From the NCBI RefSeq assembly GCF_040938485.1, contig NW_027271164.1, positions 2,108,001-2,172,000 of the forward strand: a DNA stretch of 64,000 bases, written 5' to 3'. Origin of the DNA: Diadema antillarum (lineage: Eukaryota). The translations under genes and the position numbers were made by a program. Every line of letters begins with the position of its first letter. Within the stretch, counting starts at the first letter, position 1. The notes under the pieces were generated by a model. That model made no database searches and was not told the origin of the DNA. It saw only the letters and a list, made by a program, of their open reading frames with translations. Below are positions 8,113 to 11,100 of this stretch, piece by piece.

Positions 8113-11100
8113 TTAATTGCAGGTAGGTTCATTCTTGTATTCCTCAAACGCCTGCTGCCATGCTGTCATCTCAGTCTTCCAGTCATCATAAATTTCTCGC
8201 CATTCCTTCTCAGTGTCACTAATGTCGTCTGGATAAAATGAACGTAAAACCAAGGTTTTTAATCTGAGTATTTTCCTCTGTACAAAAATTCAGTACATGT
8301 AGTCGTATATATATTAATTTCTGTCCAGCCATTGAAAGACTGAAAATAGTGGTAAAAATATTGTATCATACGTGTTATAATGAATGATTTGACTGAGCGT
8401 AGCGCCAACAGTCTTACAATGTACACGAACAATAAAAGGAAGATCCGAGCGGTGTTGATTTTTCTGTTAATAAACGAAATGGTCAACCTTTTACAAGTAG
8501 GTCCTAAATATTTAAAACAAAAGTAGAGAGGGTATGTTTATTACTTCAGAAGACCAACTTTAAAATGGAATGAGCGTCTGCTCCTGACACCATGCCATAT
8601 TAAGCATCTCATCATTCCAAGCATAGAATCCTTGTTATTTTGGTGTTTAATATCTATTCCTCCACGTAAATACAACATTAGATATGTCTAGATCTGTGTA
8701 TTATTCTTTATATAGACGGATATATCATGATCTATCACCTTTAAAATTAAACTGTGAGAGAAAGCCTGACCCTTAATGCATGTGCTTTGAGATGTAGCTA
8801 AACACAAAGACGAGGCATGAATGGTACCTGTGAAGGCAGCGAGGGAAGGGATGTACTGGTTCCAGAAATGACACTGCCTGGCTCTGACAGCCCTCCCCGT
8901 GGGTAGCCCTACTGTCATCTCCTTGTATGTGAGGTCAGGAATGGTGTACTCTGGCCAGGCGTACTGTCCTTCCCATGGGTCTGAATCCATGCTCGGCTTA
9001 CTGGGATTTCTTTGTAGAAGGAAACAGAAGGAAAACGGAAATCACTTTTTGCTTCTGTTTGTAATGAAAACGTTATAAACCGAGCCTGAAGATTTATGTA
9101 CCATTAGTTCACAACAGCAGGAAATCAAAGAATTTCAGTAGAACAATTCAAAAGTTGAAAGAAGTCCCAATATACATGGAAAATCTTGAACTGCTATAAT
9201 CTTCCAAACATAGCCTGCATTAGTAAAACATATACATTTGAAAAAAAAAATATCATTGCCGCTTTGGGTGACATTTTACAATAAGTAATCTAATTGTAAT
9301 CTGAATTAGTCTTACAGAAGACAAAGAACAAGGCGACCTTACCCCGACTTTGCAAAGTTCGTCCAAAATTCCATGAACTTAACAGAGAGGGCGTTTTCAT
9401 CTGCCGTCATGTTATGGCCCTTGATGTGATAAAGTTCGTCAATAAATGGAATACCCCATACGAACGTCAGATCTTCTGAATGGGTTGCCCCAAGCCATGG
9501 AGTCGAGGGAACGATGTCTCCATACTGGAAATAGCTCCTTAAAAAAGAAAACAGAAAAGGAGAGAAAGACTTGCACATATAGTATATAGGTGAAACTTGT
9601 CATAAACTGAACTGATAACTGTGGATCAAAAGTTATTTGGAAATTAAACTTATCCAAAATAGTAACGGTAATAATGATGATAATGTGTTCTCGTATTCAT
9701 CATGAAATTAAAAAAAAAAACTACTATGGCTTCCAATTCCTGATACTTGCTAAACAAGCTCGGCGCATGTCTTTTCCATATCCATAAAATTAACGAGATG
9801 TACAAGATGATGATGATGACAGTAATGGCATTTAGAAAGTGCGGTATCGAGGTTGTTACAATTACGAAGTGGGATTGGTAGAGTTCCACAGACGTAGTGC
9901 AACAGAAGAGAAGGCTCTACCCTCATAGACTTTTAGGCGGGTACTGGACACATGGAGAGTCAATTTAGGGTAGGCCAACATAAAACAACAACAACAAACA
10001 AACAAAATGATGATGATAATAATAATAATACGTTGTAGTGTATACTTTTATAGCGCAACAGTCCATCAAAGAGATGCTCATGGCGCTTTTAGTCTTAAGG
10101 TTAGGAGAAGAAAAAAAAAGATGAACAAGAAGAAAAAGGAATTATGTGACATCTTCACTTTTTTGTTTCCTACAACATATTGAACAGATATGTTTTTAGA
10201 GATGTTTTAAATGATTCCACAGAGGATGATTGGCGAACAGTGACAGGGATATCTTTCCAAACTTTTGGTCCAATGCGGGAGAAAGAACGAGTTCACCATG
10301 AATGCTTAACCTTAGGTATCTGAAATGAAAAGTAAGTAGATGGTCGAAGTCTGCAAAGAGGGTTATAACAATATAAAGAATTCTGGATATACTCGGGTGC
10401 AGTCATAGGTAATTCAATACTGTCAAACTATAGGCAAATGAATATGTTACTGGAAAGAAAAGAAAAGTAAATGCTCACTTGGTTGGTTGATGAGTCATGA
10501 AATATTGAAAGACAGGATAGCCAGCCTCGGCGTGCTCCCTGACCACCAGATCGGTCGGGCACCCGAAGTCCATGTCTCCGGACACGTCCACTATGGATCG
10601 GAAGTAGTCGGCCAAGGGGTCATCAGCCACAGTCCAGTCCACGTACTCATGTGTCGTAGCATCGACAATGATGGCGTCGTCCATTTCGACCCATGCGAGT
10701 GTGTTTTGAAGTATCTCATCAAACACGGTTCGATTGAGGTGCGGATGTTCCTCAGCTCCTGCGTAGGAGGGATAGGCGAAGTACACGAACAAGGCGGCTT
10801 TGTCCTTGTTGGATCCAACGAGGATTGGAACATCGGGAAAGTCTCCCTTGTTGTACATAGAGCGAGGGCTCTCCTGCAGAAACACCCCGTCTAGAATCAC
10901 GGGATATCGGTCTGAATGAATCTGGAAATGCCAAACGTTACAATTAGAAATTTATCTCGGGGTTTGGACAGTATCTCTAAGTGTAAGCAAACCTCCCACC
11001 TAACGTGTGCTGTAGGAGGAGAAAGAGATAAGTAAGAACACAGACATTCTTTCCCCATCATTTACTCTCTTTTTTTTTGGGGGGGGGGGGGGTAATGCAA

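Follow-up and report, generated by a model that had tools for sequence, protein, structure and literature searches.

Gene B, a cholinesterase-like gene in a 64,000-nucleotide stretch of the Diadema antillarum genome (NCBI RefSeq assembly GCF_040938485.1, contig NW_027271164.1, positions 2,108,001 to 2,172,000 of the forward strand; this whole stretch is termed the window, and coordinates given without a prefix refer to it), was found to encode Lys at the position of the acid residue of the Ser-His-Glu catalytic triad. Glu is encoded at this position by the second copy of the gene in the same assembly and by the ortholog of Diadema setosum. The reading favored here, with fair confidence, is that the Lys codon is a recent and probably activity-killing missense allele, present in the heterozygous state, in an esterase gene that is under weak constraint and belongs to a birth-and-death family, and that no long-maintained pseudoenzyme is involved. 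Gene B is one of the intact genes of a tandem family of secreted esterases with the cholinesterase fold that occurs across echinoderms; on the window haplotype, a single CpG G-to-A transition would have exchanged its triad acid for Lys.

Lys at the catalytic-acid position of gene B

Gene B was modeled exon by exon on the minus strand, from 18103 to 8113, as 10 exons comprising 599 codons and a stop codon (exons 1 to 5 at 18103-17942, 16692-16516, 15368-15209, 14743-14666, and 14192-14074; exons 6 to 10 at 11649-11482, 10921-10479, 9537-9343, 9009-8828, and 8228-8113). The intact frame claimed in a first-pass annotation of the window, which was made from the DNA letters, was confirmed: the 10 exons are unbroken, all splice borders are AG/GT (every intron being GT-AG), and the product includes a signal peptide and, at the C terminus, a tail rich in Trp. 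Database searches, for which single exons or full-length family proteins served as queries, retrieved with the full-length family protein P0006 the RefSeq protein XP_071492981.1 (P0162; "cholinesterase-like [Diadema antillarum]"), which agrees with the model at all 599 amino acids (100% identity). The product matched Pfam COesterase (PF00135) over profile positions 2 to 515 of 515 (E = 6.5e-127; 425 bits against a cutoff of 27). The window exhibited 0 mismatches, outside masked N, to contig JBFRCO010000276.1 of GCA_040938485.1; the contig locus compared includes 32 masked bases, which were kept out of the analysis. Lys329 is real both in the deposited assembly and in the RefSeq protein.

The first-pass annotation had reported the motif G-S-N-K-D-K-A in place of the family motif G-x-N-x-D-E-G. 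The minus strand does read GGA TCC AAC AAG GAC AAA GCC from 10816 to 10796, with the Lys codon (codon 329, AAA) at 10799 to 10801 and the derived base, the first A, at 10801. Genes C and D were also described correctly as having kept Glu, with GFNEDEG at 28673 to 28693 and GFNKDEG at 42435 to 42455, both on the minus strand. Assignment of Lys329 to the triad-acid column was upheld by phmmer alignments to Protein Data Bank chains, in which "lvgsnkdkaalf" of B was aligned to "lvgvnkdegsyf" of AChE and to "llgvnkdegsff" of Torpedo AChE; Lys329 fell on index 324 of the Torpedo chain, equivalent to E327 given an offset of +3, and the same offset placed Ser207 of B on Torpedo S200 and His455 on H440. 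Where the triad acid (Glu or Asp) follows strand β7, window B has Lys329 instead.

Among the 150 best representatives of an exhaustive exon 7 search, 122 covered the acid column and had Glu (110) or Asp (12) but never Lys. Glu or Asp was likewise present in 188 of the 190 relatives of at least 400 amino acids, with a single instance of Lys, in a Patiria miniata paralog (P0236) from which the nucleophilic Ser has also been lost. All of the other echinoid family members retrieved had Glu or Asp at this position. As judged from these alignments, the rarity of Lys in the acid column is beyond chance.

Glu in a second D. antillarum copy and in D. setosum

The 90%-identity cluster containing XP_071492981.1 had only two other members, namely, a second D. 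antillarum copy on contig JBFRCO010000533.1 (P0280; locus L001, termed copy L1), which is 95% identical to B, and a protein encoded on D. setosum chromosome OZ188199.1 (P0281; locus L002), which is 92% identical. The acid region is VGSNKDKAAL in the window copy (copy W) versus AGSNRDEAAL in L1 and AGFNRDEAAL in D. setosum, and codon 329 is AAA in W and GAA at both of the other loci. As the preceding codon is GAC, the change of GAA to AAA is a single G-to-A transition at a CpG. Since L1, the D. setosum ortholog, and practically all relatives have Glu, Lys329 is, on this comparative evidence, a derived state; it is private to the window copy and, by the same comparison, a young change.

The first-pass annotation had proposed that B might be a dedicated pseudoenzyme or decoy subunit, loosely comparable to the neuroligins. 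An inactivating change that has been maintained would be conserved in orthologs or alleles; P0280 and P0281 both have Glu, and the proposal was not supported. In the sister species, the D. setosum ortholog reads GAA and does not share the Lys. Loss or a strong reduction of activity in the window copy itself is still a reasonable deduction from the loss of the triad acid, and it is the evolved decoy subunit that lacks support. A rare allele had been named as one way in which the proposal could fail, and it is on this count that it is weakened: the base is real in the assembly, yet it is private to one copy in an assembly described in print as containing both haplotypes.

A consensus or polishing error at 10801 was considered as another explanation of the A, and the assembly papers report a low coverage of ~11x per haplotype together with Illumina polishing. 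However, there is no long homopolymer at the site, the HiFi reads have a mean quality of Q34, and the base is one of 23 window-private substitutions in the coding sequence, with two others within 18 nt, as in a real divergent haplotype. An assembly error is, in our estimation, improbable.

Relationship of the two D. antillarum copies

The window and contig JBFRCO010000533.1 were colinear across all of the 28.8 kb compared, with 83 to 97% identity and the same gene order (C-like, B, A-like). The assembly papers give a size of 1.75 Gb versus a haploid estimate of 703 Mb, 84.4% duplicated BUSCOs, and a heterozygosity of 2.52%, and the later of these papers states that both haplotypes were retained in the assembly. 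In D. setosum there is one B gene, located at the syntenic position, and W and L1 were sisters (99/91) within a B clade with support of 100/100 in a maximum-likelihood tree. Because the contigs are colinear, both haplotypes were retained, D. setosum has one B gene, and the copies are sisters, the two D. antillarum copies are, from these sequence comparisons, likely to be alleles of the one animal sequenced, which would then be a Glu/Lys heterozygote. Since the assembly holds both haplotypes, any oddity that seems specific to one paralog should be compared with the second contig first and only then interpreted as an evolved feature.

Divergence was estimated with the Nei-Gojobori method from hand-checked exons (codons 34 to 596). 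Synonymous divergence (dS) was 0.082 between W and L1, 0.176 between W and D. setosum, and 0.20 between L1 and D. setosum, and the corresponding ratios of nonsynonymous divergence (dN) to dS (omega) were 0.27, 0.16, and 0.15. The first of these dS values is high for alleles and would suit a different origin, in which the copies are young paralogs produced by a segmental duplication specific to D. antillarum and the window copy is becoming a noncatalytic binding or decoy subunit that could co-assemble with active paralogs via the shared tail. This is the proposal of the first-pass annotation, confined to one young duplicate. The assembly papers do concede that some genuine duplication remains; W retains an intact open reading frame and a branch omega below 1; and genes B, C, and D have nearly identical tail exons, through which hetero-oligomers of B with C and D are conceivable on sequence grounds. 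Against recent paralogy stand the documented presence of both haplotypes, the proportion of duplicated BUSCOs, and the single B gene of D. setosum. Furthermore, gene A exhibited a dS of ~0.086 between the same two contigs (a rough value from automated codon maps), and, as this is similar to the value for B, the divergence appears to be that of the whole region rather than of B alone. The automated maps, derived by tblastn, overshoot exon ends and inflate dN (65.6 nonsynonymous differences for B versus 28.3 in the hand-built alignment) and were therefore put to rough use for gene A only. Lys is, in addition, present in no other family member of the B clade, and no sign of selection for the change was detected. 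Recent paralogy is thus unlikely, although it retains some weight.

The Glu and Lys forms could instead be old haplotypes, whose dS of 0.08 amounts to nearly half of that to D. setosum, under balancing selection, with a dead Lys subunit that would co-assemble with active subunits via the shared WAT-like tail and tune or sequester esterase activity. This is very improbable; if true, a dominant-negative or decoy allele of an oligomer with the cholinesterase fold would be segregating in nature.

The intergenic DNA between genes C and B was also compared between the contigs. It spans ~5.3 kb in the window (19126-24485) versus ~1.6 kb on JBFRCO010000533.1, and exon 7 of the gene upstream of B on the latter contig matches that of C at only ~88% identity, so C/D copy content may not be the same on the two haplotypes.

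Active site, fold, and tail of the window copy

The other triad residues and the disulfide pairs that the first-pass annotation had listed as kept in B were all located. The nucleophile, Ser207 (codon AGC, 14149 to 14151, minus strand), lies in FGQSAG, and the triad His, His455 (codon CAT, 9480 to 9482, minus strand), lies in GATHSEDL, in a column that was invariant in the alignment of relatives (A2). The three disulfide pairs are C87-C102, C262-C273, and C409-C547. Exon 10 (8113 to 8228, minus strand) encodes the WAT-like tail and the TAA stop codon; aligned to the Torpedo T peptide, the tail has three Trp residues spaced by 7 residues (W-x6-W-x6-W) and a C-terminal Cys598, and its score against Pfam AChE_tetra (PF08674) was just under the 25-bit cutoff (20.6 bits; E = 3.6e-4). 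In cholinesterases, the WAT tail binds a proline-rich anchor peptide, the proline-rich attachment domain (PRAD). B ends, in this WAT-like tail, 44 residues beyond its esterase domain, with no further hydrophobic segment.

An AlphaFold2 model of B, built with 97 relatives, had a predicted local distance difference test (pLDDT) score of 94.4 and a predicted template modeling (pTM) score of 0.91. Lys329 was placed in the turn right after the strand at residues 321 to 326, with a pLDDT of ~98. Torpedo AChE was the best Foldseek match of the model, and chains of AChE, BChE, and CES were among those matched.

Two further departures from the family consensus were common to all three B-lineage copies. 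The oxyanion-hole motif is G-G-G-I (15324 to 15335, minus strand) rather than the consensus GGGF, and Gln206 in FGQSAG replaces the Glu of FGESAG. As FGQSAG and HGGGI occur in all three copies, they are older traits of the B lineage than Lys329, and, as Gln was present in 10 of the 65 representatives covering the motif, FGQSAG alone is no sign of a dead enzyme. A second window-private change was found at codon 261 (GAG, 11563 to 11565, minus strand), which specifies Glu at a conserved Gly position (Gly in 139 and Glu in 0 of 191 relatives).

The active-site periphery differs widely among the neighboring esterase genes. Gene C has FGVSAG, with Val for Glu beside the nucleophile (exon 5, 33687-33805), and the oxyanion motif HGGSF (exon 3, 35000-35159), and gene A likewise has GGSF. 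Exons 9 and 10 of B, C, and D (8113-9009, 25842-26515, and 40142-41164) are much more alike than the remainder of these genes, with ~95% DNA identity in exon 10 versus 62% protein identity overall; the similarity of the tails fits gene conversion of the tail.

Predicted effect of Lys329 on activity

The triad acid of cholinesterases normally orients the catalytic His and stabilizes its protonated form, and engineered mutants of this acid (E334 in human AChE and E327 in Torpedo AChE) are reported to be inactive. Window B is a natural variant at the same residue position, with a change to Lys. Lys329 would reverse the charge beside the catalytic His in a protein that, having Gln206, also has no second carboxylate nearby; with this combination, esterase turnover is expected to be abolished or greatly reduced, and the allele would be null or hypomorphic. 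The substitution would probably not interfere with folding, secretion, or assembly via the tail.

The Lys variant might nevertheless still be an active hydrolase, operating as a Ser-His dyad or with Asp328 or Asp458 as the acid and exhibiting altered kinetics or an altered pH profile. Ser207, His455, Asp328, and the oxyanion hole (GGG and Ala208) are all intact, and the fold was predicted with high confidence. A positive charge beside the His should, however, disfavor the imidazolium, and the second active-site carboxylate is missing from FGQSAG. Moreover, the near-universal Glu or Asp in the acid column (188 of 190 relatives) and the loss of Ser from the one other Lys-bearing paralog also argue against residual function. 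Retention of activity is therefore unlikely and carries little weight. Should the Lys allele prove to be real and inactive, as in the reading favored here, the two forms would constitute a natural, matched Glu/Lys pair for probing the function of the echinoderm "cholinesterase-like" family.

Constraint on the B lineage

Substitutions in the coding sequence were apportioned on a three-branch tree, giving 10 synonymous and 13 nonsynonymous changes on the W branch, 18 and 15 on the L1 branch, and 46 and 25 on the D. setosum branch. The W-branch ratio of 13:10 was below the neutral expectation (P = 0.017), indicating purifying selection on B and that the window copy is no decayed pseudogene. A processed or decayed pseudogene was likewise ruled out by the intact 599-codon reading frame, the GT-AG introns, and an omega below 1.

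Constraint on the B lineage nevertheless looks weak for its family, as judged from sequence comparison. For one and the same species split, branches of the tree in the B lineage had ~3 times the length of those in sister clusters, and each copy carried private changes at conserved sites: E329K and G261E in W; G464D, at a conserved Gly (Gly in 169 and Asp in 0 of 180 relatives), and a 15-nt deletion in L1; and an insertion and an altered splice acceptor in D. setosum. Weak constraint on the B lineage, within a family that is redundant and evolves by birth and death, may explain why the Lys allele has been tolerated. In itself, a missense change private to one copy is nothing unusual for a gene that belongs to a large, redundant family with fast turnover.

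Gene conversion was considered as a source of the Lys codon. Three of the window-private substitutions (A323V, R327K, and E329K) lie within 18 nt, but this clustering was not significant (permutation P = 0.34), and no donor of K329 was present among the paralogs retrieved.

Several points weigh against a recent inactivating allele under weak constraint. The effect of Lys on activity is deduced by analogy with triad-acid mutants of cholinesterases, and the status of the Lys form as an allele is deduced from the assembly. The dS between W and L1 is ~3 times the genome-wide heterozygosity of 2.52%, a value that would also suit a young segmental duplicate. Finally, an overall omega below 1 indicates purifying selection through most of the history of B, such that "weakly constrained" holds only in a relative sense.

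Comparison with known systems

The T subunit of Torpedo and human AChE is among the closest known systems, with the same fold (Foldseek template modeling scores of 0.79/0.89), 32% identity to B, and a phmmer match (E = 1e-93) over B residues 50 to 598, including the T peptide. B and AChE have in common the triad Ser and His, the oxyanion hole, three disulfide pairs, and a C-terminal tail that is rich in Trp and ends in Cys. B differs from AChE in having Lys for the triad Glu in the window copy, FGQSAG for FGESAG, a 12-residue gap that removes the omega-loop segment with the choline-binding Trp84, and His and Asp for the acyl-pocket residues F288 and F290 (AChE residues W84, F288, and F290 as listed in PMC12447245). 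Because the W84 segment is deleted, the acyl pocket has His and Asp, and the nucleophile motif is FGQSAG, B is, by sequence, a cholinesterase-fold esterase and no acetylcholinesterase in the strict sense.

B belongs to the echinoderm "cholinesterase-like" or "cholinesterase 1" tandem family, which is represented in Diadema, Strongylocentrotus, Lytechinus, sea stars, and sea cucumbers. It is 56 to 68% identical to its Diadema paralogs and resembles its neighbors C and D in exon structure, intron phases, and tail, but the other echinoid members, including the allele and the ortholog of B itself, have Glu or Asp at the acid position. P. miniata P0236, annotated as "cholinesterase 1-like," is the only other relative with Lys in the acid column (SNAEKGT). 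It differs from B in that the nucleophile has changed from Ser to Gly (FGEGAG); it has 501 amino acids, is 42% identical to B, and is, from its sequence, an independent and more fully inactivated paralog.

Neuroligins and other cholinesterase-like adhesion molecules (CLAMs) share with window B the cholinesterase fold and an incomplete triad. These proteins lack the Ser, are membrane anchored, and are conserved as nonenzymes across phyla. B, in contrast, keeps Ser207; it has a signal peptide, is predicted to be secreted, and ends in a WAT-like tail, and its defect is unshared by its ortholog. A neuroligin-like reading of B was ruled out by the retention of Ser207, the absence of a membrane anchor, and the lack of conservation of the defect.

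Other features of the locus and of the related copies

The window contains four tandem COesterase genes, A (partial), B, C, and D, all on the minus strand. Like B, genes C and D are built of 10 exons, and their intron phases match those of B; they are 88% identical to one another, and B is 62 to 63% identical to them.

Copy L1 carries a 15-nt deletion (L001:18740-18830) that removes Cys-Asn-stop, including Cys598, and the frame reads on for 11 more residues. The C-terminal Cys of AChE T subunits forms an intersubunit disulfide. Exon 2 of L1 (L001:11848-12024) has the private changes Asp60Asn and Glu63Ala, which recreate residues of the neighboring "cluster 2" paralogs (YANPPARF); the pattern is suggestive of gene conversion by a paralog over a short tract.

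The D. setosum ortholog has a 6.4-kb insertion inside exon 1, after codon 26 (L002:5231-11818), in which no open reading frame of at least 150 amino acids was found. At exon 7, the acceptor AG has been replaced by AT (L002:18600-18660), and the RefSeq model, which starts inside the insertion, has no signal peptide. In this species, the gene may be in decay or may be spliced in a new way.

Intron 5 of window B contains a reverse-transcriptase insertion of the long interspersed nuclear element (LINE) type at 11919 to 13721 on the plus strand, antisense to B, with an open reading frame (11781-13301) that matched RVT_1 (E = 7.9e-35). The insertion is specific to the window copy; neither L001 nor L002 has it, and the junction shows a short overlap. 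Within intron 2 of B, the window has three head-to-tail units of ~117 to 122 nt each (16085-16322), and a single unit is present in the L001 contig and in D. setosum.

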